Sequence record: NC_028268.1
Reading direction: 5' to 3' (one strand)
DNA: 38,049 bases
The notes under the pieces were generated by a model. The model had not been told where the DNA came from. It did no database searches and saw only the letters and a list, made by a program, of their open reading frames with translations. Position 1 is the stretch's first letter, and each line of letters begins with the position of its first letter. A program made the translations under genes and the position numbers. This document shows, in pieces, positions 2,562 to 26,326 of this stretch.

Positions 2562-2570
2562 TATATAATA
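2562..2570 (-). promoter_or_regulatory. TATA box for the M48 protease gene
   Basis: TATATAATA about 35-40 nt upstream of the start, directly abutting palindrome S3. Confidence 0.55.
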
Positions 2571-2615
2571 TGTTAGAGAAGGTATTACCGCTATGCTGTG
2601 AAGTTTTCTCTAACA
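2571..2615. repeat. Bipartite palindrome copy S3: TGTTAGAGAA-N25-TTCTCTAACA
   Basis: Perfect 10-bp inverted repeat, arms at 2571-2580 and 2606-2615. Confidence 0.9.
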
Positions 2616-2893
2616 CGTGCTGGTGGTGTGAGCCCGATGCGAGCCTCGATCATAAATACCGTAGCCATGTAACATGACATCTATACTGCTTAGACTTACT
2701 CCAAATGAACCCACCCCACCTAGAGTTACGGCTTCCGGCCACGATGTAGGGAAGGGAGTTTTCCCTTGTTTCCAGCCTAGCACCCTCTGGGGAGGTTCCG
2801 ATTTTATTATTCTAGGGTTTTTCTGGGTGCCTCCTATAGTATTAGGAGTCATGGTGGCAAAGGCTGCATGTTAGAGTTTCCGATTACGTCGCG

Positions 2894-3877
2894 TTGCAGA
2901 GGCCTGGGTTGAGATATGGACTGTTTCTCATTATATCCGGTGGGGCGGCCTTGGTTCTGAGCTTCAATATTGAAGGACGGTTGTCCGAAGTCCTCATGGC
3001 TATTAGTGCGACCCTAACGGCCTCGGGTGCGATAATAGCCGCCCAGTCCTTGGCTCAACTGGAGATTCAAGAAGCCTTAGAGAGCAGAAGGGAGCATAAG
3101 AAAAGACTTGATAAGTTGGCAGAGCGTATCATCAGAGGTGACGCTGGTAGGATTGTATCTAACGCTATAGGGTTAGAGAAAACAAAATTTGACATACTCT
3201 ATTCAGAACCCTGCGATACACTTGAAGCATTGAAAGACGAGGAGCCTTATCTCCTGAAGGATCTAGACACTCATCTTGAAGGTAAGCCTATAAGTAAACT
3301 GCTAGATGTTTGCAGGAAGCATAAAAAGTCGGTAAAATCTTTAGATGAAGAATTGGATGAGATAGCTTCCAGAGTAGTTGATTTTGTGGTGCAGGAACTT
3401 GGACAGCAGTATAAAATTCTGGAAACGTATGACAATTCGTTTAAAGAATTCGTTAAAACTAAAGTATTAGCACCCACTATAAGAACCATACATAATAATG
3501 AGTCTCAATGGACGCTTGAGAATATAGTAAAAGAAGCACGTAGAATACAGGATGAAATAAAGATGGAAGTGAAATTGAAGGATACGTACAAAGGGGGTAT
3601 GTCAGGCATAGATGTATACATGTACGCGTTCAAGCTAGTATATGTTAAAGCTCATTTGCCGACAGAGGGTCCAGCCGTTCGCAATAACGTTCTGAGAGTG
3701 TTTAAAGAGGTATTTGAACAAAAGCTGGCCAGCTATGCCAAAGACCTAGTAGATAAGGTGGAGGAGACTTCATCATTAACGCGCAGTGCAGAAGAAATCA
3801 AGAAGCTAACGGTAAATCGTTTATACGAACTGAGGGAAAAAACGTATCTTCCAAACCTCTGCCAGTACGTAAAGTAA
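2894..3877 (+). CDS. Accessory membrane-anchored protein (two N-terminal TM helices plus helical/coiled-coil domain)
   Basis: 327-aa ORF, AT-rich, with hydrophobic N-terminal segments. Confidence 0.75.
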   Translation: MQRPGLRYGLFLIISGGAALVLSFNIEGRLSEVLMAISATLTASGAIIAAQSLAQLEIQEALESRREHKKRLDKLAERIIRGDAGRIVSNAIGLEKTKFDILYSEPCDTLEALKDEEPYLLKDLDTHLEGKPISKLLDVCRKHKKSVKSLDEELDEIASRVVDFVVQELGQQYKILETYDNSFKEFVKTKVLAPTIRTIHNNESQWTLENIVKEARRIQDEIKMEVKLKDTYKGGMSGIDVYMYAFKLVYVKAHLPTEGPAVRNNVLRVFKEVFEQKLASYAKDLVDKVEETSSLTRSAEEIKKLTVNRLYELREKTYLPNLCQYVK

Positions 3878-4097
3878 AATAGCGTTACTTCAAAGGGAGC
3901 CTTGCACTGCCTACCTATGTAAAACTTTGGTCGTCTTGGGCTCCTTGATTCATTATTTGAACATTATATATCACACCCGTTAATCATCGTGTTATTAAAG
4001 CTTTGCCAGCTATGGTTGGAGAAGTCAGCTCATAACATACTCAACCATCTCTTTAAACCCTGGATGGGCCCTGGAGGTTCTGTCTGCTTGCCTGGCT

Positions 4098-4289
4098 GTG
4101 GTGGGGCTCGGGGCCCAGGTTAGGGTTTTGAGGGGGTTGTTGGAGCTGTATCATGCTAGGTTGCCCGGCGATGTTAAACGCGGTATAGTGGATATGTTGG
4201 ATGAAGCCGAGGCTTTGAAGGCCGTCTTGAAGCGGGAGCTGGATCCGGTTTTGCGTAGGCTCGGAGACAAGGTGTTAGAGAACGGTTAG
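4098..4289 (+). CDS. Small hypothetical protein (63 aa)
   Basis: ORF track; amphipathic helical sequence; TTTAAA upstream; its 3' end overlaps S4. Confidence 0.55.
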   Translation: MVGLGAQVRVLRGLLELYHARLPGDVKRGIVDMLDEAEALKAVLKRELDPVLRRLGDKVLENG

Positions 4290-4319
4290 CCTGGGTTGCC
4301 TGTCCTGTTCTCTAACACC
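4271..4319. repeat. Bipartite palindrome copy S4: GGTGTTAGAGAAC…GTTCTCTAACACC
   Basis: Perfect 13-bp inverted repeat, with 25 nt between the 9-bp cores. Confidence 0.9.
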
Positions 4320-4344
4320 CTGGAGTCTAGGGTCTAGGCATGGT

Positions 4345-4388
4345 GTTAGAGGGAGGCTTTTTGCTCCAAGCTGGATGCTTTCTATTAC
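4345..4388. repeat. Degenerate palindrome copy: GTTAGAGGG-N26-TTCTATTAC
   Basis: Each arm matches 7/9 of the consensus at the correct spacing; left arm is preceded by GGT as in the best copies. Confidence 0.5.
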
Positions 4389-4430
4389 TCATGTATGATG
4401 CATAGTATTAGATGTTTGATAAAAGAATGG

Positions 4431-5222
4431 CTAGCGTTTTTGATGGCATAGATTTAGGGCTTCCTCTGCTATTTGTACTAAATAAGTTTTTTGAACAAAT
4501 CCTACTAATTCATTTATAGTCTTACTTGTTTCTTCCGTTATAGGGTTGTCGAGTTGCTTTAGTAGGATTCTTGTTCTATCTAGTATTTCTGTTGATCCCG
4601 TAGTTTCTGCTGCTCTTTTAATGATCTCTAGAGCTTCTTTTGGTCTTGGCATTGAAAATATATCGTGTCCTTGGCTGGAGGAGGTTAGTGGCGTAATGGC
4701 TAGGGAGCGGCTTTTAATGGCCTCTGGTAGGCCCCAGCAGATGATTATATATCCTTTGAATGGATCACTATAATTATGTTTCTTTGCTTCGGCAACAGCT
4801 TTAAGGAGCGTTAATAGCGAGGCTGCAATATCTGGCTTCATTGATTCTATTACTTGTTGTTGGGCTAATTCTCTTGTGTAATAAGCTTGATAGTATATTG
4901 CTCCTAGCACGAAGAGAGATATTATTACGCTAATTATAGTTAGCACGCCTGATGTTACATCCCATAAAGGGATAAAGCCTTTAATATATAAAAGCCAACT
5001 TACTACAATGATGACCAAAGAGACTACAAACAAAATTACACTTACAAGCTTTGGCTTCAGATCCATCATCTCCCAGAGAATACTTAGACTATAGCAATAC
5101 CATATTTTATTTTTATGGTTAGAGAAGCTTCTTATATGAGGATTGTAGTTGCCCTCTAACTCCGGATTTCTATGCTCTCTTGTAAGGAGTTGTCTCTGCG
5201 TCTCGTGGCTCCTGTTAATCAT
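4431..5222 (-). CDS. Accessory membrane protein (two TM helices); true start may be ATG 5069/5066
   Basis: 263-aa ORF, AT-rich; hydrophobic LVSVILFVVSLVIIVVSWLLY and VLTIISVIISLFVLGAIYY segments. Confidence 0.7.
   Translation of the reverse strand: MINRSHETQRQLLTREHRNPELEGNYNPHIRSFSNHKNKIWYCYSLSILWEMMDLKPKLVSVILFVVSLVIIVVSWLLYIKGFIPLWDVTSGVLTIISVIISLFVLGAIYYQAYYTRELAQQQVIESMKPDIAASLLTLLKAVAEAKKHNYSDPFKGYIIICWGLPEAIKSRSLAITPLTSSSQGHDIFSMPRPKEALEIIKRAAETTGSTEILDRTRILLKQLDNPITEETSKTINELVGFVQKTYLVQIAEEALNLCHQKR
5118..5160. repeat. Bipartite palindrome copy S5: GTTAGAGAA-N25-CCCTCTAAC
   Basis: Arms at 5118-5126 and 5152-5160; the right arm has 2 mismatches. Confidence 0.75.
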
Positions 5223-5261
5223 GGTTGATGGACGTGGCGGTGTCGGGGTGGGTATATAATA

Positions 5262-5312
5262 AGGTGTTAGAGAATGTTAGGGCACTATGCTGAGGAACCT
5301 TCTCTAACACCT
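5262..5312. repeat. Bipartite palindrome copy S6: AGGTGTTAGAGAA-N25-TTCTCTAACACCT
   Basis: Perfect 13-bp inverted repeat; TATATAAT at 5253-5260 lies immediately to the left. Confidence 0.9.
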
Positions 5313-5440
5313 ACTGTTGGCGCGAGCCCGTGTTGAGTCTTGATCTATCTATGAATGCTATAGCCTTGTAATGCATGGTTTATACTGCTTATGACTTCCG
5401 CCTCTGAGTTTTAACTACTTAAAGCCCTAACTCCAGTCAT

Positions 5441-5489
5441 GGTGTTAGAGAATGTTTTAGGCGGTTTTGAACAGTCGTTCTCTAACACC
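5441..5489. repeat. Bipartite palindrome copy S7: GGTGTTAGAGAA-N25-TTCTCTAACACC
   Basis: Perfect 12-bp inverted repeat; TTATTATA at 5491-5498 lies immediately to the right. Confidence 0.9.
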
Positions 5490-5572
5490 CTTATTATACG
5501 TTTCAGGTTGCTCCGTGCTGTTTCCAGTCTTCATCTAGTATGTTGCATGGCGCATATAGTATGTAGGGTGGG

Positions 5573-5851
5573 TTGGTGTCTGTGCATGTGGATAGGTTTG
5601 TAGCAGTAGTGGATTATATTATAGATATTGTTGCGGGTGTTTTGATGGCGTTCTTCATGGTGGTGTTTGGCTGGTTTCTGAAGGGAGCATATGAAGTGCA
5701 TAGGGCTGGTGCTTGCGATGGGCTCTGCATGAATCTATTTGTTCTGAGCCTGATAGGGTTCATGCTTGCTACCGCGCTTTCCCTCTTCTTTTCTAGGTCA
5801 ATACTGAGGAAGCTAGGGGGTGCAAGTGATGGTCCTAGAGTATGTGCGTAG
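5573..5851 (+). CDS. Small membrane protein (two TM helices)
   Basis: 92-aa ORF with two long hydrophobic stretches. Confidence 0.65.
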   Translation: MVSVHVDRFVAVVDYIIDIVAGVLMAFFMVVFGWFLKGAYEVHRAGACDGLCMNLFVLSLIGFMLATALSLFFSRSILRKLGGASDGPRVCA

Positions 5852-6308
5852 GCTTGTTGGGGCTAGGGAGAAGCCTGATCCCCGTGAGCTTTTGGGTTTG
5901 GTGGAGGCGGTTGATGCTGGGCAGCAGCAGGGTGGTGCGCCCCCGTTCGACTTGTATACGTTGCTTGAGGACGAGAAGGTTGGGCGCGAGCTGTGGCCCT
6001 ATATTCTGGGGTTTGTGGCGAGGGATACGAAGCTCACCTACTTTACGGAGAGGGATGAGGAGTACCTGTTCTGGAAGATCGAGGCGATAGCGACTAAGAT
6101 AGAGATGGCGCTGAACTCGCAGACCCCGCCGCCCGACCGGTTCCCCAGGGTTGAGGATTACGTGAAGGTTGTGGAGGCGCAGCGGCTGCTGGCGGACAAC
6201 CTGAGGGTGCTGATGCTGGCGGCCGTGAGGCGCTCCACACTGGGCTTCGAGAGGAGGCTGCAGGCGATGCGCCACTTCGTCTTCTCCTACTCGGACAGGA
6301 GGTTCTAG
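5829..6308 (+). CDS. Hypothetical viral protein (about 159 aa)
   Basis: ORF 5820..6308 with in-frame ATG at 5829; first gene of the GC-rich co-directional block. Confidence 0.7.
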   Translation: MVLEYVRRLVGAREKPDPRELLGLVEAVDAGQQQGGAPPFDLYTLLEDEKVGRELWPYILGFVARDTKLTYFTERDEEYLFWKIEAIATKIEMALNSQTPPPDRFPRVEDYVKVVEAQRLLADNLRVLMLAAVRRSTLGFERRLQAMRHFVFSYSDRRF

Positions 6309-6313
6309 GGGCC

Positions 6314-7273
6314 TTGATGGGCGCGCTCATGCTGCTGGGCATGGCCCTCGGGGGGCTGGCGGGCCTGGGGGCTGGCTACCTGCTCTACCCCTCGAGGCCC
6401 GACCTGGCCCTCCTGGCGGGGCTGGGCGCCGGTTCGGCCCTGGGCTGGGCTATGGGGTTCTTCTACTGGAGCTTCGGGGTTCCACCGGCGTTCAAGCAGG
6501 CTATGCGGGCTGCTAGAACCGGGTTCCTTATTGTGGCTGTGGGGGCGGACAAGAAGGCCCGCCTCCTCCCGGGGTTCAGCGACGGCTTCGTGGTCCGCCC
6601 GGCGCCTAGGCCCTACAGGGATAAGTACGCGTGGGCGGCGGACGGGGAGAGCAGCTACCCTATCCACGGGGGCCGGGGGACCCAGCTCCTCGTAACATTC
6701 ATGGGCTACCCCTTCCCCCTGGAGGCCGGGAAGGCGGCGGCCGTCTCGAAGTTCAGGGAGAGGGGGTTCAGGAGCATTGAGGACCTGAAGACGGCGGTGG
6801 AGCTGCCTACTGTGGAGGAGATTGAGGCCCGGATGCGGGAGCTGGAGGCGGCTAGGGCCTCTATAGAGAAGATGGACGAGGGGGAGGTTAGGCGGCTCTA
6901 CGGCGAGGATAAGCGCCAGCTTCTCGCTGAGGTTGATAGGGAGCTGGAGCGGCTGGAGAGGGTTAGAGAACTCGTTAAGGAGTACGGCGGCGGCAGTTCT
7001 CTAACCGTTAACGTGGACGGCGCCACGGTGAGGGCCTCGGACCTCATCTCCTACCTCGTCTGGCGCCACCATCCGAGCGAGATCGACAGGATAGTGAAGG
7101 CTGAGACCAACGCGGTGCTCTCCAGGCTCTCCGCTGTGGACTGGCTGAGGCAGCTCCTGCCGGTCATCATAGTGACGGGTATGTTCGTGCTGGGTATCAT
7201 AGTGGTGGTGTACATGCTGAAGGGTGGCGGGCCCCCGGCGCCGGTCGAGTCCATAGCTATAGGGGGTGGGTAG
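6314..7273 (+). CDS. Membrane protein with N- and C-terminal TM helices and a central coiled coil (position analogous to fusellovirus B277)
   Basis: Hydrophobic termini and an EEIEARMRELEAARASIE coiled coil; lies upstream of a small gene and the ATPase. The homology is a synteny-based inference. Confidence 0.7.
   Translation: MMGALMLLGMALGGLAGLGAGYLLYPSRPDLALLAGLGAGSALGWAMGFFYWSFGVPPAFKQAMRAARTGFLIVAVGADKKARLLPGFSDGFVVRPAPRPYRDKYAWAADGESSYPIHGGRGTQLLVTFMGYPFPLEAGKAAAVSKFRERGFRSIEDLKTAVELPTVEEIEARMRELEAARASIEKMDEGEVRRLYGEDKRQLLAEVDRELERLERVRELVKEYGGGSSLTVNVDGATVRASDLISYLVWRHHPSEIDRIVKAETNAVLSRLSAVDWLRQLLPVIIVTGMFVLGIIVVVYMLKGGGPPAPVESIAIGGG
6961..7006. repeat. Bipartite palindrome copy S8 (inside CDS): GGTTAGAGAAC…GTTCTCTAACC
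   Basis: Perfect 11-bp inverted repeat, with 26 nt between the cores. Confidence 0.9.
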
Positions 7274-7276
7274 GCT

Positions 7277-7681
7277 TTGGGCTACAGCAGGTTCAGGACT
7301 GTTAAGAGCCTGCAGCCCGGCTTCATAGCCGTCATCTCCGAGGTGGCCCTGGAGGCTGTTAAGGCTAAGATCGCCGCCTCGAGGAACCCCTTCGCCGCCT
7401 ACGACTACGCCGAGGCCCTGGACGCCCTGATATCCGTTCTGCCGCCGGAGGCCAAGCAGGACATTACCAAGCGGCTCGGGGTTGACGTGGATATTGTCGT
7501 CGAGGAGGCCCTCGGTAGCTGCTCGAGGGATCCGAACGCGCATCCCTACGTAAACGAGGCCAGATGCCTCCGGAGGGTCAAGGAGGACCTAGACAAGCTG
7601 CTCCGAGTTGTTTTCGACGTAGCCCACAGGAGGGGCTTGTTCGTGGTTGAGAGGGAGGTGCTGTACGGTGGGGAGGCGTAG
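7277..7681 (+). CDS. Hypothetical helical protein (position analogous to fusellovirus A154)
   Basis: 134-aa ORF immediately upstream of, and overlapping, the ATPase gene. Confidence 0.7.
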   Translation: MGYSRFRTVKSLQPGFIAVISEVALEAVKAKIAASRNPFAAYDYAEALDALISVLPPEAKQDITKRLGVDVDIVVEEALGSCSRDPNAHPYVNEARCLRRVKEDLDKLLRVVFDVAHRRGLFVVEREVLYGGEA

Positions 7682-8540
7682 GATAGAGGATGTCCTTGAG
7701 ATACTCGAGTCCGGGGATCTAGGTGAGATAGACGGGGTGGCGGAGAACGCGAGGGAGTTCTATGAGAGGCCTGAGGAGGCCGAGGAGTCCGGCGTGGGCT
7801 GGAGCATCCTCGCCGGGTGGATGGAGTCGGCGTTCAGGACCGGCGGGTTCAACTCGGTTATAGTCTACGGGAAGCAGGGGGCCGGTAAGTCCGTGTACGC
7901 CATTAAGGTTGTCTACGACCTGCTCCGCAGGCTGGGCGTGGTGCCCGCTAGCTCGACCAGCCGCATAGTCTTCAAGCGGTACATGGTTTTCTCCGCGTCC
8001 CACTTCATCGGGAAGATCAAGAACGCCCGGGGGGCTAGGCTGCCAGCGGTGATATGGGACGATGCGGGGGTCCACGGGGGGTCCTACCTGTTCTTCACCG
8101 ACGTGTTCCTGGCTAAGGCTTTGGGCGACCTCTTCAGGGTCGCCAGGACCAGGGTGGCCAACATAATCTTCACAACCCCCAGCCCCCGGGACCTGCTGAA
8201 GCCGTTTCGCTCCTACGACACGATTATAGTCTATGTGCACGAGATGGACGAGGTTTGGTCGAGGGCACACATCTACAAGATGAGGCTCCTGCCCTCCGGC
8301 GATGTACGGGTTCAGAAGAAGGCTATGGAGGACTTCCGGAGGAGGCTTAGGACCTACGACGAGTACATCAGGATTAGGGATAGGTATGTTGACGAGGCTA
8401 TTGACGCTTTGGAGGAGCTTATGCTGGTCAAGTATGCTGAGAGGGCTATGAAGAGGGCCAGGCTGTTTGAGAAGGCTGCAAGGCTGGGGGGCTGGAGGGG
8501 GTTTGAGGCAGAGGACCAAGGATCCTATCGGGACGATTAG
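7647..8540 (+). CDS. P-loop ATPase, SSV1 B251-like (putative packaging ATPase)
   Basis: Walker A VIVYGKQGAGKS, Walker B AVIWDDAG, and downstream NIIFTTP strand. Confidence 0.85.
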   Translation: MRGRCCTVGRRRIEDVLEILESGDLGEIDGVAENAREFYERPEEAEESGVGWSILAGWMESAFRTGGFNSVIVYGKQGAGKSVYAIKVVYDLLRRLGVVPASSTSRIVFKRYMVFSASHFIGKIKNARGARLPAVIWDDAGVHGGSYLFFTDVFLAKALGDLFRVARTRVANIIFTTPSPRDLLKPFRSYDTIIVYVHEMDEVWSRAHIYKMRLLPSGDVRVQKKAMEDFRRRLRTYDEYIRIRDRYVDEAIDALEELMLVKYAERAMKRARLFEKAARLGGWRGFEAEDQGSYRDD

Positions 8541-8573
8541 GATCTCCCAGCTACTGTTAAACCTGGTGGAGCA

Positions 8574-8625
8574 GATGTGTTAGAGAATGTTTTCTCGTGA
8601 TGGTCTAGTTGTTCTCTAACACATC
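8574..8625. repeat. Bipartite palindrome copy S9: GATGTGTTAGAGAA-N24-TTCTCTAACACATC
   Basis: Perfect 14-bp inverted repeat, the longest copy; TTTATAAA follows at 8627-8634. Confidence 0.92.
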
Positions 8626-8626
8626 C

Positions 8627-8634
8627 TTTATAAA
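8627..8634 (+). promoter_or_regulatory. TATA box (TTTATAAA) for ORF 8679
   Basis: Canonical archaeal TATA box 45 nt upstream of the ATG. Confidence 0.6.
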
Positions 8635-8678
8635 CCGGCTCCTCAAGCTGCATTCTTATTTGGGGGTCACCGCGGGCT

Positions 8679-9344: not shown

Positions 9345-9367
9345 AGCATTACATCTTTGGGTGCCGC

Positions 9368-10087: not shown

Positions 10088-10102
10088 GGGTGGTGTGGTT
10101 GC

Positions 10103-11368
10103 ATGCTGAGGCGTCGTGTTCTGATGGACGGCGGGGGCTCGGCTGGCTCCGCCCCCTCCTCCCCCGGCTCTTCTAGGCCCCCGGACTACAGCCTCTACGA
10201 GTCTCAACCCCGACCGGCACCCGCGTCCTGGAGCCCCCTGGGTGTGCTGGCCTCTGCTCTCGACGCCCCCTACAGTTTTGTCCAGGAGAGGGGGTGGGGG
10301 GTTGTTGAGAGGCTTAGGAGGAGGGCGTTGAGGGAGAAGGCTGAGGGGGACTATGCCGAGGGGTTTCTCTGGGCTCTGGGCGCCTCTGCCGCTAGCTTCG
10401 GCGTGGGCGTGGCGGCCGGTGTTACGGGGCTCTTCAGCCCTAGGGCCTGGAGGGAGGCTTTCCACGCCTTCATGCACCCGGGGGAGACTGTGAGGGCCGT
10501 GGCGTCCGACCCTCTGTCGTGGCCGTATCTTGCGGGGTCTGTGGTCGGGCCTGCTAAGCTGGGGAGGGCTGTTGGGCGGAGGCTGGGGAGGGTTAGAGAA
10601 CCCGATTTAGCCTCTACCAGCGAGGGTTCTCTAACACTTGTGGCCGCCAAGGGAGAAAGGCTCAGATGGGCGGCCAGGCTCGAGGCAAGAGGCCCCACAG
10701 TAGGGGTTAAGGGTGTGAAGCCCAGGCCCCCGCCAGACAGGCTCGTCACCCTCGAGACCCCGAGGGGTAGGGTTGAGCTGCTCGAGTCTAGGCGGGGCTC
10801 CACCGTTAGGAGGGTCTATAGGGCTGAGTACAGGGATGTGGGGAAGAAGCTGCTGGGGGTTGAGGAGTGGAGTGTCGAGGGCTGGCTGAGGCCTAGGTAC
10901 CGGTACCGGGGGCTGCTTGTCGACCCGGAGACGCCCGGGGCGGCCGTCCTCCTGGAGGCCCGGAGGCCGTTGTTGAGGGGTGTGGATCTGCCGCCTCCCA
11001 GACTGTGGGTCGAGCCTAGGCTTGCCGCTCCCGCCGGGGCTGTAGGCCTTATACTAGGCCTCGGCGCCGCCGGGACCGGTGCTCGGGGCGGTTTGGAGGG
11101 TGGTGCCGCTGGGCGGCCTGCTGAGGCGGGTGCCCGGGGGCTTGTGTCCGGGTCCTCTCTGGCCGGGGGTGAGGCCGCGGCCTCTACCCTGGCGGGGGCC
11201 TCGGCCGCGTCTTCCCCGGCGGAGCCCTCTGCAGCCTCAGCCGGGCGCGGGGGTCCTGAGGCTCCCCCGCTCCTGGGGTCTGGTTCCCGGGGGAGGCGTG
11301 GCAGGAGGGGGAAGCTGGCTTACTCGGAGATCCTGTATCCTGGCGGCGTGCTTCTGGAGCTTCTCTAG
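10103..11368 (+). CDS. Hypothetical (possibly virion-internal) protein with a hydrophobic segment and Gly/Ala/Ser-rich C-terminus
   Basis: 421-aa ORF; hydrophobic FLWALGASAASFGVGVAAGVTGLF segment and a basic tail. Confidence 0.65.
   Translation: MLRRRVLMDGGGSAGSAPSSPGSSRPPDYSLYESQPRPAPASWSPLGVLASALDAPYSFVQERGWGVVERLRRRALREKAEGDYAEGFLWALGASAASFGVGVAAGVTGLFSPRAWREAFHAFMHPGETVRAVASDPLSWPYLAGSVVGPAKLGRAVGRRLGRVREPDLASTSEGSLTLVAAKGERLRWAARLEARGPTVGVKGVKPRPPPDRLVTLETPRGRVELLESRRGSTVRRVYRAEYRDVGKKLLGVEEWSVEGWLRPRYRYRGLLVDPETPGAAVLLEARRPLLRGVDLPPPRLWVEPRLAAPAGAVGLILGLGAAGTGARGGLEGGAAGRPAEAGARGLVSGSSLAGGEAAASTLAGASAASSPAEPSAASAGRGGPEAPPLLGSGSRGRRGRRGKLAYSEILYPGGVLLELL
10592..10635. repeat. Bipartite palindrome copy S10 (inside CDS): GTTAGAGAACCC…GGGTTCTCTAAC
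   Basis: Perfect 12-bp inverted repeat, with 26 nt between the cores. Confidence 0.9.
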
Positions 11369-11392
11369 ACGCACCCTCCTATTGGGGGGGCG

Positions 11393-11683: not shown

Positions 11684-11686
11684 GGG

Positions 11687-14476: not shown

Positions 14477-14492
14477 GGCTGTCGCATAGCTA

Positions 14493-15182: not shown

Positions 15183-15202
15183 ATCTCGGAGGCCTGGGGG
15201 CG

Positions 15203-15520
15203 ATGCAGGGCTTCATAGCCTATCTTGTGGGCTTCGCGGTTGTGGCCGGGGTGGCGGTGGCCCTGGGTATAACGCTGGGGTTCTTCGCCGACATAGCTAG
15301 CAGTCTGACGTACACCACTACCACGACTTCGGTAGACCCTTCTACCGGCCAGACGGTGACTATAACACAGACCAACTACTACGTGCCGCAGGAGTACATG
15401 AACGTGATAGACATGGCCCAATCCCTGGGCGGCACCGGGGTCACGCTGGCGATAGCAGCGCTGATAGTGGGCCTGGCCCTTCTGCTGATAGCTGTGATCA
15501 GGCAGACTGGCGGGGTGTAG
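15203..15520 (+). CDS. Spindle-virus capsid protein (VP1/VP3-like, two hydrophobic helices)
   Basis: 105 aa with a helix-loop-helix hydrophobic pattern; clearly paralogous to 15548..15814 (MQGFxAYLVGFA…AQSLGGTGxTLAIAALIVGLA). Confidence 0.75.
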   Translation: MQGFIAYLVGFAVVAGVAVALGITLGFFADIASSLTYTTTTTSVDPSTGQTVTITQTNYYVPQEYMNVIDMAQSLGGTGVTLAIAALIVGLALLLIAVIRQTGGV

Positions 15521-15530: not shown

Positions 15531-15547
15531 AGGGTGGTGAACAGGGG

Positions 15548-15814
15548 TTGCAGGGCTTCACAGCGTATCTTGTGGGGTTCGCTATAGTCGCTGGCTTCGC
15601 AGTGGCGCTGGGCTTCATATTCGGCATATTCAACCAGATAGTGGCCCAGCTCAACACAGACCCCAACAACCCGATGATAAGCCAGGAGTTCGTCGACGCC
15701 ATAAACCTTGCCCAGAGCCTTGGGGGCACCGGCCTGACCCTTGCTATAGCGGCGCTTATAGTAGGCCTCGCGATGCTCCTCATAGCCGTGATCAGGAGCT
15801 ACTCGGGCGTCTAG
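15548..15814 (+). CDS. Spindle-virus capsid protein (VP1/VP3-like), paralog
   Basis: 88 aa, TTG start, paralog of 15203..15520. Confidence 0.75.
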   Translation: MQGFTAYLVGFAIVAGFAVALGFIFGIFNQIVAQLNTDPNNPMISQEFVDAINLAQSLGGTGLTLAIAALIVGLAMLLIAVIRSYSGV

Positions 15815-15846
15815 CCTCCAACCACCTCCCGTCTACACAGCTGTTT

Positions 15847-17139
15847 TTGGCCCGGGTGCCAGTTTTGAGGCTGTCAGCCGTACTTGCGGGTGGCCTCCTG
15901 CTCCTCTTGCTGGTGGCCCCTATCCCTGGGTGGACCCCTGCGGCTGCTCAGGCGGGCGTCTTCCTGGAGATAGTGCTGCCGGACGGGAGTGGCTACAGGT
16001 TCGGCCCCCTGATACTCGAGAGGGGCGATCTAGTGGCCCCCAGCTTCTACAGGCTGGTGCTCGACGGGTCGGGCTACGTCGAGTTCGACCTCGCGCCCGA
16101 GGCCGGTACTGTGGCGGCCCTGGTGAGGCCCTACAAGACGCCGGACTGGAACGCTATAGCCAGCAACGACGAGGCCCTCTCCTGGAGGCTCTACGTCTCC
16201 CAGGCCTCAGACGCCTACGAGTTCATGAGGAGGGACAGCGCCCTAAACGCCTACGTGGCTGGCGACGGGGCCGCCCGGGACGGCGTGCTCGTGTGGGTCC
16301 TAGCCTACACCTACAGCGACAGGCTGGAGATACACGCTACCGGCAGCGGGAGCGCCTCGTGGACCGGGAGCCCCGCGGGCCCCGCTGCCAAGGTACTGAT
16401 AGGCTCTAACATGTTCAACGGGAGCGAGGTCCCGGCCCAGCGGTGGATCGGGGAGATATGGGCTGTTGTGGTGCATTCGCAGCCCGCCGTCGACCCTAGG
16501 GGCTACGAGGTCCCCGCTTCGGGGCTGGAGCTCCTATTCGACCCGGGCTGGTACCTCGGCGGGGGCCTGTTCGCCGGGCTCTCGGGGTCCGGGTTCGTGT
16601 ACGGGCGCCTGGTAGGTGATGCTGTGCTCGAGGCGTCTGCGCCTAGGATCTGGGTGGTTAGAGACGCCTACACAGACCAATACCTGCACGTTTCTCTAAC
16701 ACCCTACGGCTCGAGGCTGAGGGTGCTCGACGCCTCCGGCGAAGTCCTGGCAGAGTATAGTGTGATATCAGACAACAGGGTGGGGGACCTGGTGCTCGAC
16801 TACCAGGTACCCTGGCCCCCGGCGCCGGGATCCGGCGGTGGTGATGGGGGGCTGGGGGCTCTGGACCTGCTGGCCGTCCCCGTTGTGCTGCTCGCCCTTG
16901 CAGCCCCGGGGGTTGCCCTGGCATCCGGTCCGGTTTGGGGGTTCACCTTCGCCGTCTTCGCCGGGGTCGCTGGCTGGGTCTCACTGTCGCGGGCCGGTGG
17001 CTTGGGGGTTGAGGGGAGCGTGTGGCAGGGGCTGGCGCTGCTCGCCCTGGTCAGCATGGTTCTGGCGGTGGTCCTATCTGCGGTCAAGCTCCTCGCCTGG
17101 AGGGGCGGCCTCAGGGAGCCCAGGGGTTTGGACCTGTGA
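15847..17139 (+). CDS. Secreted, membrane-anchored protein with a probable LamG/concanavalin A-like domain
   Basis: Signal peptide; …VLIGSNMFNG…WIGEIWAVVVHSQP resembles the LamG C-terminal motif; three C-terminal TM helices. Confidence 0.6.
   Translation: MARVPVLRLSAVLAGGLLLLLLVAPIPGWTPAAAQAGVFLEIVLPDGSGYRFGPLILERGDLVAPSFYRLVLDGSGYVEFDLAPEAGTVAALVRPYKTPDWNAIASNDEALSWRLYVSQASDAYEFMRRDSALNAYVAGDGAARDGVLVWVLAYTYSDRLEIHATGSGSASWTGSPAGPAAKVLIGSNMFNGSEVPAQRWIGEIWAVVVHSQPAVDPRGYEVPASGLELLFDPGWYLGGGLFAGLSGSGFVYGRLVGDAVLEASAPRIWVVRDAYTDQYLHVSLTPYGSRLRVLDASGEVLAEYSVISDNRVGDLVLDYQVPWPPAPGSGGGDGGLGALDLLAVPVVLLALAAPGVALASGPVWGFTFAVFAGVAGWVSLSRAGGLGVEGSVWQGLALLALVSMVLAVVLSAVKLLAWRGGLREPRGLDL
16657..16700. 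repeat. Bipartite palindrome copy S11 (inside CDS): GTTAGAGAC-N26-TTCTCTAAC
   Basis: Arms at 16657-16665 and 16692-16700. Confidence 0.8.
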
Positions 17140-17360: not shown

Positions 17361-17381
17361 ATAGTCGGTCAGGGTGGGAGT

Positions 17382-18230: not shown

Positions 18231-18317
18231 GCTATCCACGGCCTCCACCCCCTCCCCATTCCCCCTCTTTTCCTCGGGCCTCGGCCGGTTGACGCATAAC
18301 CTTTTTGGTGGGGGAGT

Positions 18318-19922: not shown

Positions 19923-20042
19923 TTGTCCACCAGCTTCTCAGGCCTTAAGCCGGAGGCAGTTAAGATAGAGTAGCCGTGGCTCATTGTAACCCTGTTTTTA
20001 CTCTTTCCACTGTTCCCCCTCGTGGGGGGTTGTCAGGTCGGG

Positions 20043-21699: not shown

Positions 21700-21766
21700 C
21701 CGTGGCGGAAGTCGATTATCACGGTTTTTGTAAGCACATTATCTATAAACTCTATTTTCGGGGGTT

Positions 21767-22096
21767 GTGGGCGGCTTGTCTGTTCTGAGGCTTACCTGGT
21801 ATAAGGTTCTACCCCTGTATATGCTGGGCGCTGTTTTGGGTTACCTGGTTTTCTCTGCTGTTCTGTCCATAGGGTCTGGCAGCAGTATGTTCGACCCTCT
21901 TTGGCTGTATATCGTGTTGGTGACGGCCTTCCTCTCCCCCCTCTCCATGCTTGTCTGGGGGTTCCTCTCCCTGACGGCCTGGCTTCTCGATAGGAAGCTG
22001 GGCCCCTACGCCATGTTCGTGCCCCTTGTTGCCGGGGCTGTTATGGGCCCATTAACCCTCTACATACTCGTCCGCGGCCTTCTAGTCTATCCCTAG
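21767..22096 (+). CDS. Small polytopic membrane protein
   Basis: 109 aa, three hydrophobic helices; AT-rich promoter-like sequence upstream. Confidence 0.65.
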   Translation: MGGLSVLRLTWYKVLPLYMLGAVLGYLVFSAVLSIGSGSSMFDPLWLYIVLVTAFLSPLSMLVWGFLSLTAWLLDRKLGPYAMFVPLVAGAVMGPLTLYILVRGLLVYP

Positions 22097-22125
22097 CCCT
22101 CCCACACCCCGCGGCGCATATCTTT

Positions 22126-22548
22126 GTGGTGCGGTGTGGCTTGCTGGGCTGGCTTAGGAGGAAGGCGGGGGAGCTCAGGAGGAGGCGTAGGGTTCGCTCG
22201 AGGATAGTCTCCCATCTCGTGAGCAAGGGCGTAGCCAGGAGGGATGCAGAGAGGCTCGCCCCCCTTGTTATGAGGGGCGAGCTGACGGTCTCGGAGGCCG
22301 TATCCCTGGGTAAGAGGCTGGGCCGGGATAGGGTTGCCAGGGTGGAGCGTCGGCTGAGGGGCGAGGAGCGCCGCAAGAACGATAGTAAGGGCGGGGATAG
22401 GTTCCTCGGGCTCTCACGGTCAATACTGGGCTTCACGCTCGGAACCTCTGGGAGCCAGCCTATCGACCTCTTCGGCGGCCAGACGGGGGAGTCTAAGCGC
22501 CGGAGGAGGCGGGGCGGCCGGGAGCCCGGGCAGCCTCCCCTGTGGTGA
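22126..22548 (+). CDS. Arg-rich basic protein
   Basis: 140 aa with several poly-Arg stretches. Confidence 0.6.
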   Translation: MVRCGLLGWLRRKAGELRRRRRVRSRIVSHLVSKGVARRDAERLAPLVMRGELTVSEAVSLGKRLGRDRVARVERRLRGEERRKNDSKGGDRFLGLSRSILGFTLGTSGSQPIDLFGGQTGESKRRRRRGGREPGQPPLW

Positions 22549-22577
22549 GAGCATCATCCTCTTGGGGCGGGGTGTGG

Positions 22578-22913
22578 ATGGCGGTGAGGCTTAGGAGGAG
22601 GCGCCGCCGGGGCTCCCGGTGCCCTGTGCCACGGGAGAACCCCCGGACGGGCCGTAAGACCAAGTATCTGGGGCACAGGGTTAGGGATGTGGGGGGCTCG
22701 GGGCTCGATAGCCCCCGGGAGTTCAGGGGTATACTGAGGGAGGTTACGAGGGACTACAGGGAGGGGTGCATATCTAAGCGGACGGCGCGGGGGAGGCTCC
22801 TGCTGCTCTACAGGCTGACTTACCCTCGCTATAACAGGAAGGCCAGGCGTATCCCGGCCTCGACGAGGAGGAGGCTTAGGGAGGAGATAAGGCGGGCGAT
22901 GGAGAGCCTATAA
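22578..22913 (+). CDS. Highly basic putative nucleocapsid/DNA-packaging protein (VP2-like by analogy)
   Basis: In-frame ATG at 22578 within track ORF 22542..22913; very Arg/Lys-rich. Confidence 0.6.
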   Translation: MAVRLRRRRRRGSRCPVPRENPRTGRKTKYLGHRVRDVGGSGLDSPREFRGILREVTRDYREGCISKRTARGRLLLLYRLTYPRYNRKARRIPASTRRRLREEIRRAMESL

Positions 22914-22932
22914 CCACCCATTTAACCGGGCG

Positions 22933-22975
22933 GTTAGAGAAGCACGATCCGGCTACTGTCTTGACGTTCTCTAAC
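22933..22975. repeat. Bipartite palindrome copy S12: GTTAGAGAA-N25-TTCTCTAAC
   Basis: Intergenic, upstream of the zincin gene; arms at 22933-22941 and 22967-22975. Confidence 0.9.
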
Positions 22976-23006
22976 ACCTCCGCATTTATGCTCTGGGGAG
23001 GGCTGG

Positions 23007-23984
23007 TTGTTCGAGGGCAGCGAGTACCTCTACCCCCTCTACAGGCACCTATACGGGCTTGGCCTGACTAGGGAGGAGTGGCTCCGTGCCAGGGAGGCGT
23101 TCAGGGAGAGGGCTAGGAGGTGTCCGCGCTGCGCCTTTATGGACGTCGGGCTGGCGGCCAGGCACGCTAGGTCGCTGAGGCAGTGGATGAGGTCGCCCAA
23201 CAGGTACGACATACCCGGCGTTGACTCCCCGGAGGTGGGCTGGTGGCTCGAGTCCCGGGATCTCCTGGAGCCTTATAGTGAGGAGTCCAAGAGCATCCTG
23301 GGCGAGGTTGAGAGGGCTAGGAGGGCGGTGGAGCTTTACTTCGGCGAGCCGGTGGCCACGAGGGTCAGGGTTAGGTACGAGGAGGAGATGGATAAACCGG
23401 GGGTTCTGGGGTACTGGGAACACAGGCCCGGCTGGGACTATGGAGTGCTGGCCGTTAAGAGGGGGCTGGGCGAGAGGTTCAAGGACGTGGTCGTCCACGA
23501 ACTGGTGCACGCCTGGAGCCTCGGCAGGTACAGCGACGTTCCTTACGGGGAGAAGGCGGGGAACCCGGCGTGGAACATGAGAGTGGTTGAGGGTAGCACG
23601 GAGACGGCTGCCAAGCGGGTGCTCTCGTTGCTGGGCTTGAAGCCGTCCGCAGTGGCCTACTCGGCCCTCGTCGAGAGGCTCTCGGAGGGGGGCGCGGAGA
23701 GGGGTGTAGAGGCGGCCCTCGAGTTCCTCCGGGCGGCCAGGGAGAGGAGGCGGCCTAGGGGCGAGTACATGAGGGAGGCTGTGCTGCTGAAGCACACGGA
23801 AGGCCCCGACGTCTACGTGTCAAAACCGCCGGAGAGGCTCCCCGGGGAGGCGAGGGACCTGCTCTCGCCTAAACCCTTCCCCGCCGAGCTCGCCCTCGAC
23901 AGGACTCTGAGGCCTTTCGCAGAAGCCCTTAAAACCCTCAGGAGGCAGAGGAGGAGGGGCGGGAGGAGGCGGCGTTGGGGCTAG
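23007..23984 (+). CDS. Zincin (gluzincin-like) metallopeptidase domain protein
   Basis: VVVHELVHAW (HExxH) followed by VVEGSTE (candidate third-ligand Glu); basic C-terminus. Confidence 0.7.
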   Translation: MFEGSEYLYPLYRHLYGLGLTREEWLRAREAFRERARRCPRCAFMDVGLAARHARSLRQWMRSPNRYDIPGVDSPEVGWWLESRDLLEPYSEESKSILGEVERARRAVELYFGEPVATRVRVRYEEEMDKPGVLGYWEHRPGWDYGVLAVKRGLGERFKDVVVHELVHAWSLGRYSDVPYGEKAGNPAWNMRVVEGSTETAAKRVLSLLGLKPSAVAYSALVERLSEGGAERGVEAALEFLRAARERRRPRGEYMREAVLLKHTEGPDVYVSKPPERLPGEARDLLSPKPFPAELALDRTLRPFAEALKTLRRQRRRGGRRRRWG

Positions 23985-24232
23985 ACCCCTTTGTCATCCA
24001 GGCCCGGGAGGGCGACAGGGAGGCCTGGACCCGGGCGAACAGGCTCGCTGCGGGGCTGATGGCTATAGGCTACCCGGTGGAGGTCAAGCCCCTGCCCCGG
24101 AGCTCGCGGGAGAGGCTCGTAATAGTAACCCCCCTGGGAGGGCGTATAGCCGACCCCGGGGAAGGGGAGCTGCGTGATATACTGGACTACCCCCACATCC
24201 ACGCGGGCTACATTGTAGACGCCGAGCACTAA
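23975..24232 (+). CDS. Hypothetical protein (85 aa)
   Basis: ORF track; overlaps the end of the previous gene. Confidence 0.6.
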   Translation: MGLDPFVIQAREGDREAWTRANRLAAGLMAIGYPVEVKPLPRSSRERLVIVTPLGGRIADPGEGELRDILDYPHIHAGYIVDAEH

Positions 24233-24278
24233 ACCCCCCAGGGTCTCCCGGGGTGGATTCCGAACTTGGCGGCGGCGT

Positions 24279-24324
24279 GTGTTAGAGAATAAGGCTAAAT
24301 TCCTTACAGCATTTTCTCTAACAC
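24279..24324. repeat. Bipartite palindrome copy S13: GTGTTAGAGAA-N24-TTCTCTAACAC
   Basis: Perfect 11-bp inverted repeat, intergenic. Confidence 0.9.
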
Positions 24325-24397
24325 CCCACACACCCCCGACCAGCCACGACACACATACACCCAACCCCCCGCCACACACAGGCCGGGCGGAAGCACA

Positions 24398-24589
24398 GTG
24401 GGGGGTGGCGGGTTGGACTGGGCGAGCGTCTTCCAGTTTTACGCCCGTCTCAAGAGGGAGCTTAGGGAGGCGGTGCACGGTTGCGAAGCAAGCCCTGAGT
24501 GCAAGAGGATCGTGTGGGAGGCCGTCTCGAGAGTCCTGGAGGAGAAGGCAGTAGAACTCGAGGAGATGGCCGCTTCTTCTCCCAAGTAG
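24398..24589 (+). CDS. Small hypothetical protein (63 aa)
   Basis: ORF track; helical sequence with a CxxxxxC pair. Confidence 0.5.
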   Translation: MGGGGLDWASVFQFYARLKRELREAVHGCEASPECKRIVWEAVSRVLEEKAVELEEMAASSPK

Positions 24590-24761
24590 GCTATAAAATA
24601 TTGAAGATTATGAATTCGAATGTACGAGTGTCTGTTTGTGTTTTTAATTATCTGAGTTTCACTAACGTATATTTTTCTTTGGGCTGTTCGATAGGGCGCA
24701 TGTGGAATACGGATAAGCGCCTATGCTTGGTGGACTGCTTTAATATCTAGGTGATGACAAG

Positions 24762-25229
24762 TTGAGTTCAATGATTCGTCATAGGGAATCATACATACTG
24801 TCGCTGATAGTAGGGGTTCTCTCCGCATCTATACTGTGGTTGGCTTCTAAGGGGGTCATCAGCCCTAGTGTTTATCCTATAATGGCATCTGTCTCAGCCA
24901 CACTCTTGGGCTTTGTATTCACGGCGGAACAGTTAGCAATAATGATATTGGCCAACGAAAATAGTACAGTGGCTAAAATCCTGCGGAAACACAACCCAGG
25001 GTATATTAACGAGCTTCTCGGGCTAGCAGATCTTACCATGGTTTCACTATTCTCCACGGCTATAGTAAGTGGAGCAGCGTCCATCTTCGCTTTCTATCCA
25101 AAGTTTATTGCTTATACAACAATGTTCTTGGTGGGGGTGAGCATGATGTCATTACTTATCTTAATTCTTAACGTGCAGAAACTCTATCATGATCATTTTA
25201 ATGTAGACCTTTCCTCGAATAACCGGTAG
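24762..25229 (+). CDS. Accessory four-TM membrane protein
   Basis: 155 aa, AT-rich, four hydrophobic helices; RBS GGTGA upstream. Confidence 0.75.
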   Translation: MSSMIRHRESYILSLIVGVLSASILWLASKGVISPSVYPIMASVSATLLGFVFTAEQLAIMILANENSTVAKILRKHNPGYINELLGLADLTMVSLFSTAIVSGAASIFAFYPKFIAYTTMFLVGVSMMSLLILILNVQKLYHDHFNVDLSSNNR

Positions 25230-26248
25230 GATTCGCGTATCAACTCGCTGTTTTTCAGAGCCAATTCTTTAAGAATGTTTAGTGAGGCAGTGGTGTCAGT
25301 GCTTCTGAGGTATCTCCCACCACTTCGTGCTTTTGGTATGCTAACTTCCCTAAATACCAAGGCATCCTCTACAAGGTCGACTACTCTTCTAGGGCTTCCA
25401 AAGGTTATCTTGAAACGTTGGAGGGATTCTTCTCCTAATTCTTCTCTTATTGAATTAAACAGCTCTAGCAACTCATCTATCGTGAAATCTAACTCCTGAT
25501 CCTTACCCCTTCCAGCGTGCTGTATAGCTTCGTATAACTGTCCTCTTATCTTGGTTATATCTATACCCAGCTTTTCTAACAGCATGTCTATGGTCCTTTG
25601 GTTTGTGAGCCGGGCTTTATTTGATATTTTGAGTTTTATATCGATCTGTTTTATTGTAGAATCACTATACAGTTTTAGTAGCTCTTCAGTGTCTGGTCTA
25701 TAGAGTTGCCTAATGGCTATTCTGATTTTGTCACAGTTCTTCAACAATACATGTATCTTTTGCGGCCCAATTCTCTGGCAATATTCTTGGGCCGCTCCTC
25801 TGAATAACGTGCTGAGGATTCCATGTTTTGGAACAAAGCTAGTTACTTCTACAAGGGCTATACCTGGCTTAATCAAAATCATATGAGCATACTCATAGAG
25901 ATCCTCATCATCGCTGAGCTTTTTAGAAAGGGACGCATGTCTTCGACTTTTTCTGTCATAGAAATGTGACAAACCTTCATGCCTAAGATATCCGTAAACG
26001 ATACCTAGGTATTTTTCTCCATTAGCTGGAAGTTCTTTTATATCTGTTATTATGGGGATTTTTTCTGGCGAGAAGGGATTGTTATTGGAGTTCAGCGGAT
26101 ACGAGGTGGATTGGGCGTACTTCACCACATCTGTAATAAATTGATAGTTCAGCTTGATAACTTTTTTATCTTCAGTGTAGGCTTCAGCGATAACTCCATA
26201 AGCATAAATGTTCCTTTTGTATTCGTGGGAGGCCAAGTGAATCACCAT
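25193..26248 (-). CDS. Accessory soluble protein (351 aa), convergent with the four-TM gene
   Basis: Long AT-rich ORF; TATA-like sequence and palindrome S14 upstream. Confidence 0.8.
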   Translation of the reverse strand: MVIHLASHEYKRNIYAYGVIAEAYTEDKKVIKLNYQFITDVVKYAQSTSYPLNSNNNPFSPEKIPIITDIKELPANGEKYLGIVYGYLRHEGLSHFYDRKSRRHASLSKKLSDDEDLYEYAHMILIKPGIALVEVTSFVPKHGILSTLFRGAAQEYCQRIGPQKIHVLLKNCDKIRIAIRQLYRPDTEELLKLYSDSTIKQIDIKLKISNKARLTNQRTIDMLLEKLGIDITKIRGQLYEAIQHAGRGKDQELDFTIDELLELFNSIREELGEESLQRFKITFGSPRRVVDLVEDALVFREVSIPKARSGGRYLRSTDTTASLNILKELALKNSELIRESYRLFEERSTLK

Positions 26249-26278
26249 GGAACATTCGAACCTCGTGCTACAATTTAA

Positions 26279-26326
26279 GTGTTAGAGAATAATCAGCGAC
26301 AGATTAGGTCGATATTTCTCTAACAC
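26279..26326. repeat. Bipartite palindrome copy S14: GTGTTAGAGAA-N26-TTCTCTAACAC
   Basis: Perfect 11-bp inverted repeat; last copy seen in the genome. Confidence 0.9.

Follow-up and report, generated by a model that had tools for sequence, protein, structure and literature searches.

In the spindle-shaped virus SSV1, the ribbon-helix-helix (RHH) repressor F55 acts on tandem direct 11-bp repeats that lie over the TATA box and transcription start site (TSS) of four promoters (T5, T6, Tind and Tlys). Archaeal activator sites placed upstream of the recognition element (BRE) for transcription factor B (TFB) include the upstream activating sequence (UAS) of Ptr2 in M. jannaschii, the TFB-RF1 site of P. 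furiosus and the GvpE UAS, and the gp71 stoperators of mycobacteriophage L5 are 13-bp sites that lack symmetry and are preferentially oriented with respect to transcription. To our knowledge, almost nothing is known about gene regulation in crenarchaeal viruses other than those of Sulfolobus, and no regulatory circuit has been assigned to APSV1, the virus examined in this study. Its sequence (NC_028268.1), a stretch of 38,049 nt that was analyzed over its whole length and is referred to here as the window, carries 14 copies (S1-S14) of a 47-bp palindrome, GTGTTAGAGAA-N24-26-TTCTCTAACAC. Features of the sequence suggest that this element is probably, though by no means certainly, an operator recognized as double-stranded DNA by a single sequence-specific protein that coordinates viral genes. 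A full-text literature search found the element undescribed, with the arm sequences retrieving unrelated papers only.

The palindrome resembles the F55 system in that both belong to temperate spindle-shaped crenarchaeal viruses, one short sequence is repeated at several promoters, and a single viral regulator is thought to hold the lytic genes through the BRE/TATA/TSS region. It differs in that the APSV1 site, a 47-bp dyad whose arms are separated by 24-26 bp, stops short of the TATA box on its upstream side, and in the presence of 14 copies, some of them intragenic; an F55-type operator was rejected because APSV1 has an inverted repeat upstream of TATA instead of tandem direct repeats over TATA and TSS. 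An RHH protein (gp48) is encoded by APSV1, with no demonstrated link to the palindrome. Among host regulators, ArnR has two boxes (TCGAC-N5-GTCGA) at -43 to -84 of flaB (PMC6396743). The APSV1 element likewise has two half-elements, presumably both needed, and it shares with the upstream-of-BRE activator sites a position of approximately -35 to -80, upstream of or overlapping the BRE, where recruitment of TFB and the TATA-binding protein (TBP) is assisted. However, those sites serve host regulators and consist of compact 13-17-bp dyads or pairs, whereas the APSV1 arms are non-palindromic 9-mers approximately 34-35 bp apart; in addition, an APSV1 arm replaces the BRE in several promoters instead of preceding it, and an activating role is putative. 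The L5 stoperators offer a parallel for many copies of one site spread across a temperate virus genome, in promoters as well as transcribed regions, a likeness that could account for the copies within genes and at 3' ends in APSV1. L5 is a bacterial phage, however, and its sites are asymmetric, while the APSV1 element has dyad symmetry and sits exactly beside a promoter in half of its copies; an L5-type stoperator was therefore rejected on symmetry, although the multi-copy intragenic distribution is similar. Multi-promoter operators of virus regulators are thus already known from SSV1 F55 and phage repressors. The features that appear unusual in APSV1 are the widely separated 9-bp half-sites, the selected intragenic copies and the copy fixed in a gene for a protein with two predicted helix-turn-helix (HTH) domains, for all of which the literature search found no archaeal precedent, together with the replacement of the BRE and conservation across a lineage of uncultured proviruses.

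Palindromes were counted using 9-bp cores (GTTAGAGAA in the left arm and TTCTCTAAC in the right), a gap of 23-27 bp and at most three mismatches, and were compared with composition-preserving shuffles. By this definition APSV1 contains 14 full palindromes where 0.07 were found in the shuffles, plus two decayed relics, and a scan for single arms with at most one mismatch yielded 21 matches against 0.32 expected. The core GTTAGAGAA is the most frequent 9-mer in APSV1 and in two related proviral contigs (L255 and L257), and ranks second in a third (L254). Each arm spans 9-11 bp around its invariant core, and the arm centers lie approximately 34-35 bp apart with a tolerance of about 2 bp. The spacers, in contrast to the arms, are unrelated in sequence (mean identity 27%), while their length is held at 24-26 bp. 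Invariant arms combined with random spacers are the signature of a protein-recognized operator, and the copies display the over-representation, dyad symmetry, conserved arms and free spacer of an operator set. The RefSeq annotation of APSV1 lists 53 coding sequences (CDSs), nearly all hypothetical, at a coding density of 90.6%; the backbone has a GC content of 0.60-0.66 and is interrupted by two low-GC islands (GC 0.40-0.50) at approximately 1.8-5.85 kb and 24.4-34.1 kb. An initial sequence-only reading had spoken of intergenic palindrome copies. Nine of the 14 copies are intergenic, although non-coding DNA makes up only 9.7% of the genome (p=1e-6), and the remaining five (S2, S5, S8, S10 and S11) fall within annotated CDSs. 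Between positions 26,327 and 38,049 there are zero copies.

In eight of the 14 copies, a TATA-like or promoter-type box follows one arm within 0-7 nt, and the gene on that side always reads away from the palindrome. S1 (GGGTTAGAGAC-N26-TTCTCTAACAC, 315-362) lies between orf1 and orf2, with the box CGCATACAA (365-373) 2 nt beyond the proximal arm and 26 nt ahead of the orf2 TTG start at 391, while S12 (22931-22977), between orf31 and orf32, is followed after 3 nt by CGCATTTATG (22981-22990) and then by the orf32 TTG at 23007. S3 (2570-2616) occupies the divergent region between orf4(-) and orf5(+), where TATATAATA (2562-2570) adjoins it on the side of orf4, an M48 protease gene. The perfect palindrome S6 (5264-5310) has TATATAAT (5253-5260) 3 nt outside, on the side of the orf7 ATG (5222, minus strand) 34 nt away, and the likewise perfect S7 (5442-5488) has TTATTATA (5491-5498) 2 nt outside on the side of orf8(+). 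S9, also perfect (8577-8622), sits between orf12, which encodes a DnaA-like ATPase, and orf14, with TTTATAAA (8627-8634) 4 nt outside. S14 (26279-26326), another perfect copy, lies in the divergent orf36(-)/orf37(+) region and is adjoined by AATTTAA (26272-26278); the center of this box is 27 nt before the orf36 ATG at 26248, implying a leaderless transcript. S5 (5116-5162), which has a degenerate right arm (CCCTCTAAC), lies at the annotated 5' end of orf7 and adjoins an all-A/T tract (5104-5116) that faces an alternative start, a minus-strand ATG-ATG at 5069/5066. The annotated orf7 start (gene coordinates 4431-5222) is itself doubtful, since the first 51 codons hold S5 and look non-conserved, and translation from ATG 5069, with the A/T tract upstream, gives MMDLKPK and then directly a transmembrane segment; it is more likely that S5 lies upstream of a true start at 5069. 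The box coordinates given for S3, S5, S6, S7, S9 and S14 by the sequence-only reading proved exact in all six cases, each 0-4 nt outside the arm and on the expected side.

The boxes at S1 and S12 are of the canonical APSV1 type, CGCATATATA, which recurs approximately 24-29 nt before the start codons of orf2, 8, 19, 21, 22, 25, 26, 30 and 32. Sixteen of the 22 occurrences of GCA[TC] within 60 nt upstream of starts fall at -31 to -22, a peak that indicates leaderless or near-leaderless promoters, including those of structural genes. Distances from the arm-adjacent boxes to the annotated starts would fit such a geometry at S14 (27 nt), S1 (26), S12 (24) and S6 (34), could do so with short leaders at S3 (39), S5 (41) and S9 (48), and fit poorly at S7 (81). 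An octamer composed entirely of A and T starts within 4 nt of an arm in five of 28 flanks, compared with 2.8% of non-coding positions (p=1e-3), and the test gives a similar result within the low-GC islands (4 of 12 flanks versus 4.3%, p=1.3e-3), where a looser box with at least seven A/T of eight is also enriched (7 of 12 flanks versus 23%, p=9e-3). When 42 copies including those of relatives were pooled, 25 of 84 flanks had an A/T-rich box at an offset of at most 6 nt against 16.1 expected (p=0.011, with non-ORF DNA as background), and 11 had an all-A/T octamer against 3.7 expected (p=9e-4). TATA adjacency is therefore real and non-random, with an effect that is moderate, not overwhelming.

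The position of the proximal arm relative to the BRE is of two kinds. At S3, S5, S6, S7 and S14 the arm replaces the BRE, while at S1, S9 and S12, as well as at orf19 and orf26 of L254, it overlaps the upstream half. The archaeal BRE consensus is of the RNWAAW type. By inspection, S3, S5, S6, S7 and S14 do not carry a purine- or A-rich stretch in the 6-7 bp upstream of TATA, having instead the arm end CTAACAC/T, and this mismatch is the basis for proposing factor-dependent access of TFB. TATA boxes and start sites are never covered by a copy, which in every case ends just upstream.

The genes served by promoter-adjacent copies include low-GC ones (orf4, 0.43; orf7, 0.38; orf8, 0.47; orf36, 0.40) and GC-rich core genes (orf2, 0.57; orf14, 0.60; orf32, 0.66). 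The suggestion that the targets are mostly AT-rich accessory genes did not hold, as the conserved copies serve the GC-rich core genes (orf2/3, orf14 and orf32). Transcription units that start with a palindrome are orf2-3, orf4, orf7, orf8-12, orf14 onward, orf32-33, possibly orf34, and orf36, which amounts to the majority of units in 0.3-26.3 kb. The promoter regions of orf4 and orf7 (2550-2700 with S3 and 5240-5395 with S6) are 72% identical over approximately 170 nt, a stretch comprising the TATA box, the palindrome with the spacer part CTATGCTG, and about 110 nt past the distal arm, ending near TATACTGCTTA. In addition, a 20-mer that joins arm and TATA (TTCTCTAACACCTTATTATA) is identical in S6 and S7, and together these identities indicate that a promoter-operator module was duplicated. 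The proposal that accessory genes of different origin were placed under one common element gains support from the orf4/orf7 module and the shared 20-mer, although the regulon does not consist mainly of accessory genes. The additional conserved 110 nt of S3 and S6 could represent a small minus-strand open reading frame (ORF), a non-coding RNA (ncRNA) or further regulatory sites.

Relatives carrying the element were sought with the pattern GTTAGAGAA-N22-28-TTCTCTAAC in 185,579 species-representative genomes (596 Gb), a scan that did not extend to the A. pernix K1 chromosome. Approximately 100 single bacterial matches were obtained, about as many as 18 specified bases would match at random in a set of that size, while all loci with at least two palindromes were found in metagenome-assembled genomes (MAGs) of Acidilobaceae/Desulfurococcales (L009 with six copies, L040 with four, L018 and L060 with two each, L102 and others). 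Most of the archaeal loci were identified by tblastn as APSV1-like proviruses with an SSV-type integrase and homologues of orf2, 3, 6, 9, 11, 12, 14, 17, 18 and 44-47, and such proviruses account for all of the multi-copy matches; the palindrome is present in at least 10 of them. No multi-copy relative besides APSV1 was found in IMG/VR, and among the matches listed from a pattern scan of metagenome contigs there were single chance-level matches only. The host flanks of L257 (positions 1-5500) and of L251 contain no palindromes, so that copies are restricted to the proviral part, and none was found in two other A. pernix viruses, APOV1 and ACV. With copies confined to provirus DNA, the element is characteristic of one virus lineage rather than of the host.

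The most informative relative, L254, was found through its orf3 homologue, independently of the motif. This 19.8-kb contig is colinear with APSV1, shares 46-83% protein identity for most common genes and carries six palindromes, four of which lie directly upstream of promoter boxes. At orf19 the arm is followed immediately by CGCATGC, 24 nt before the start, and at orf26 the arm is followed after 2 nt by CGCATTCC, 28 nt before the start; in APSV1, these two genes are without a palindrome. The occurrence of an arm at non-orthologous promoters indicates that the element has been repeatedly recruited to the same spot relative to core promoters. Other copies are orthologous: one upstream of orf14 is common to APSV1 (TTCTCTAACACATCCTTTATAAA), L254 (TTCTCTAACACATCGTTTATTAG) and L102 (two copies), one upstream of the orf8/orf9 block is common to APSV1 and L254, where the equivalent of S7 precedes orf9, and L060 has a palindrome upstream of its orf2 homologue as APSV1 does with S1. 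Among relatives, whose proteins share no more than 30-60% identity, the arms are likewise invariant and the spacers again unrelated but 24-26 bp long. Promoter enrichment and orthologous conservation, as seen in sets of operators, are thus both present, even though six of the 14 copies lie off promoters. The view that the arms occupy the BRE position of promoters likewise stands for eight promoters, with recurrence in L254 and an orthologous case upstream of orf14, and fails for those same six copies.

The copies without an adjoining promoter include S2 (835-881), which spans codons ~19-34 of orf3. A copy at codons ~18-35 of orf3 is present in six genomes (APSV1, L254, L060, L082, L255 and L257), and in the remnant provirus L251 the orf3 palindrome has decayed. 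The orf3-internal arms encode LE...FSN in three of the genomes but VRE...SLT in other genomes, and the use of two reading frames shows that the constraint is on DNA and not on protein. S8 (6960-7007, within orf10, with a perfect 9-bp core in both arms), S10 (10590-10637, within orf16) and S11 (16655-16702, within orf23) lie where alignments with the L254 homologues are gapless through the site, with arms that encode VRE...SLT in frame. An 18-nt match is beyond drift at this rate, indicating that these three intragenic copies were selected. The perfect palindrome S13 (24279-24324) lies at the left edge of a low-GC island, with orf33 and orf34 on its two sides, and S4, also perfect (4272-4318), lies over the orf6 stop codon between the convergent orf6(+) and orf7(-); no TATA box adjoins S2, S4 or S13. 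One relic (GTTAGAGGG-N26-TTCTATTAC, 4345-4388) lies beside S4 and the other (GTTGGAGAA-N25-CTCTTTAAA, 4015-4057) upstream of orf6. Five intragenic copies and two away from promoters (S4 and S13) imply that promoter control is not the whole function. Beside S4, the small helical protein gp6 (orf6, 4098-4289) is bracketed by palindromes, with the relic upstream and S4 over its stop codon, and an S4 arm encodes its C-terminal VLEN. In L255 two diverged orf6 copies (6174-6458 and 7540-7707) each have palindromes at both ends, those at the 3' ends overlapping the genes, and the L254 homologue lies at 2902-3159.

A mechanism consistent with this arrangement would rest on a single DNA-binding protein from the APSV1-like viruses that recognizes a specific sequence, probably as a dimer or a larger assembly. 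With a box centered near -26, the proximal arm would lie at approximately -32 to -45, on or against the BRE, and the distal arm at approximately -70 to -80. Occupancy of the operator would then set whether TFB and TBP can assemble, with the bound factor either hindering or assisting TFB, and would provide a common switch over most transcription-unit starts in 0.3-26.3 kb. The copies in orf3, orf10, orf16 and orf23 and those at 3' ends would most likely be auxiliary sites for autoregulation, roadblocking or looping. Several features favor a repressor of the lysogeny type: the element overlaps the BRE, some copies are intragenic or at 3' ends, one lies in orf3, and the third of the genome with the integrase, regulator and methyltransferase genes (26.3-38 kb) has none. 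An activator is favored by the strictly upstream placement, which is typical of archaeal activator sites. The prediction of a regulon under a single regulator therefore seems essentially right for about half of the copies. A lineage-wide cis-element marking most transcription-unit starts of the replication and structural half would give a handle on the lysogeny-induction program of a hyperthermophilic provirus, and an element that replaces the BRE at several strong TATA boxes would naturally lend itself as a model of how factors act on the BRE in archaea. In MAGs, the motif can further be used in practice to recognize APSV1-like proviruses.

The leading candidate for the binder is gp03 (326 aa; orf3, 781-1761, plus strand), a tentative assignment that is possible rather than probable. 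From N- to C-terminus, its predicted architecture comprises an HTH (aa 36-87), a disordered linker, a winged HTH (aa 134-195) and a further C-terminal domain. Among PHROG families the protein hits 'transcriptional regulator' (E=3e-5), its Pfam matches to the TrmB, GntR and AbiEi winged HTHs are sub-threshold, and a search of PDB sequences with its profile gave no significant match. In an AlphaFold model of moderate overall quality (AF2 pLDDT 59.5), both HTHs are confident and separated by a disordered 40-residue linker; Foldseek returned sub-threshold winged-HTH matches only (MarR, Fur and IclR; best E=8e-3). The residues of gp03 that never vary are concentrated in the putative recognition helix, and every orf3 of the APSV1-proximal clade carries a palindrome. 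A flexible tether between two DNA-binding domains could account for half-sites spaced 34-35 bp apart with a 2-bp tolerance. Other candidates are gp14, gp6, another viral HTH or RHH protein, and a host factor. The N-terminal HTH of gp03 and gp14 share RGLGxSxxEIAxxxYxxxxRYR (pair E=6e-4), and the promoter of orf14 itself holds a conserved palindrome. No protein with a distribution matching that of the motif emerged from phylogenetic profiling, which was run on partial contigs that widely share only the integrase and orf3.

Several observations weigh against one viral regulator acting at promoters, and against gp03 as that regulator. No promoter lies beside S2, S4, S8, S10, S11 or S13, and with the looser box the adjacency in APSV1 alone is not significant relative to all non-coding DNA (p=0.08-0.5). 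The S7 box lies 81 nt and the S9 box 48 nt from the annotated start, and a canonical box of orf8 itself (5551-5559) is better placed. S8 and S10 are missing from L254 and therefore arose in place in the APSV1 line. A center-to-center distance of 34-35 bp with about 2 bp of variation is unusual for a simple dimeric regulator, and the invariance of the arms across fast-diverging viruses could point to a conserved host protein. The gp03 family is broader than the motif (54 clusters at 50% identity), and two genomes with gp03 homologues, L260 (JALWPV010000068.1) and L261 (CAZJBK010000027.1), contain no palindrome or comparable repeat. In L260, which has the integrase and orf3, the recognition helix is one residue different from that of L257, and the N-terminal codons of orf3 at the site have diverged (RGEE versus RVRE). 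The idea that gp03 always accompanies the palindrome was rejected on the basis of these two genomes, and gp03 may therefore not be the binder.

The non-promoter copies lend themselves to readings in which the sites act on one another. It is conceivable, though unlikely, that the palindromes are nodes of a provirus-wide silencing network in which a gp03-like two-HTH bridging protein occludes the BRE wherever a lytic transcription unit starts, binds selected intragenic sites and the coding sequence of its own gene, and joins these sites in loops; such a network would be the first lysogeny system of the stoperator or looping type in an archaeal virus. Hi-C of A. pernix K1 detected 19 chromosomal loops that start at the integrated APSV1, including one that reaches a type I-A CRISPR array (PMC10769869), and these are loops that the network could underlie. 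The same loops can be cited for a purely architectural role, in which site-to-site bridging serves compaction, silencing, partition or packaging, promoter proximity is secondary and intergenic DNA is simply the tolerated place. This role would account for the non-promoter copies, for the distribution of copies over 26 kb at intervals of ~0.15-6 kb, including selected intragenic ones in the structural module, for the pairs 80-210 bp apart in APSV1 (S6/S7), L102, L257 and L255, and for the long flexible dyad spacing, which suits a multi-domain bridging protein. Mere tolerance, however, does not predict the tight one-sided arm-TATA distance of 0-7 nt, repeated at non-orthologous L254 promoters, nor does an architectural role readily fit 26.3-38 kb without copies, and the Hi-C loops join APSV1 to other chromosomal loci at 3-kb resolution with no motif reported (PMC10769869). 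An architectural function alone is thus considered rather improbable. A reader supplied by the host, either a conserved transcription factor or a chromatin protein through which the virus lineage ties its promoters to host physiology, is a similarly doubtful prospect. A slow-evolving reader would easily explain 9-bp arms that stay invariant among proviruses of hosts from several genera, no viral protein co-occurs cleanly with the motif, and gp03 homologues occur without palindromes; APSV1 is also said to be induced by changed host growth conditions. On the other hand, within the species-representative scan the exact motif in these archaea occurs only in provirus-like DNA and never in host flanks, and APOV1 and ACV lack it although they infect the same host.

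Two explanations remain, and both are less probable than the preceding ones. Every copy can be folded into a 9-13-bp stem (minimum free energy -12 to -23 kcal/mol), and S4 as well as copies beside orf6 and orf44 homologues in relatives lie at gene 3' ends, as might be expected of RNA or single-stranded DNA hairpins acting as terminators, in RNA processing or stability, or in replication or recombination. The stems are nevertheless invariant, with no compensatory changes across ~40 copies, the 24-26-nt loop makes a poor hairpin, and S4, the sole APSV1 copy at a gene 3' end, is not followed by a T-run, although there is a T5 run within the neighboring relic. S3, S6/S7 and S14 have TATA boxes diverging on either side and should therefore not be transcribed, which argues for function at the DNA level, and scans with Rfam and for tRNAs gave no match; a terminator or structured-RNA hairpin was consequently rejected and is regarded as very improbable. 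Still less credible is a family of mobile elements similar to miniature inverted-repeat transposable elements (MITEs) or repetitive extragenic palindromes, or a set of recombination sites at gene-cassette boundaries, despite terminal inverted arms that look MITE-like and the clustering of copies in variable low-GC accessory regions, where they flank small orf6-like genes (APSV1 and L255). No flanking target-site duplications were found around the palindromes, the interiors are unrelated, the intragenic copies show no insertion signature in the gapless L254 alignments, and orthologous positions are kept while surrounding genes have diverged to 30-50% identity, so that this reading is largely refuted.

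A different repeat is present between two regulator genes beyond the last palindrome. The divergent region between orf44(-) and orf45(+) (34064-34202) contains 4-5 copies of the motif CTATACTCTAG, including a perfect 18-nt inverted repeat (34121-34138 and 34185-34202). The motif is conserved in L065 (2920-3017), a similar repeat (TTCTAGATTATAGAA) lies between the equivalent HTH genes of L261 (283-394), and its core, TAGAGTA, resembles the core of the palindrome arm, TAGAGAA. The product of orf44, gp44, is an ArnR1-like winged helix (E=5e-61), and gp45 is of the MarR/ArsR type. The CTATACTCTAG repeat is probably the operator of gp44 and gp45, and as such a candidate lysogeny switch; these two proteins more probably read this repeat, which lies in their own promoter region, than the palindrome.

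Several further features of the window were noted. The annotated orf13 (8537-8653, minus strand, 38 aa) wholly overlies S9 and the orf14 promoter region, and this CDS is probably spurious. Between S14 and orf37, a 390-nt AT-rich stretch (26327-26715) contains no ORF longer than 26 aa and may serve in regulation, encode an ncRNA or hold a replication origin. A relationship between orf3 and orf7, both of which have a palindrome at codons ~20-35, was considered and rejected, as BLASTP between them gave E=1.4. Finally, orf21 and orf22 (15199-15296 and 15544-15641) are adjacent small hydrophobic paralogues with 70% DNA identity, each preceded by the box GCCGCATATATA, and are likely duplicated genes for the major capsid protein of the spindle-shaped virion.

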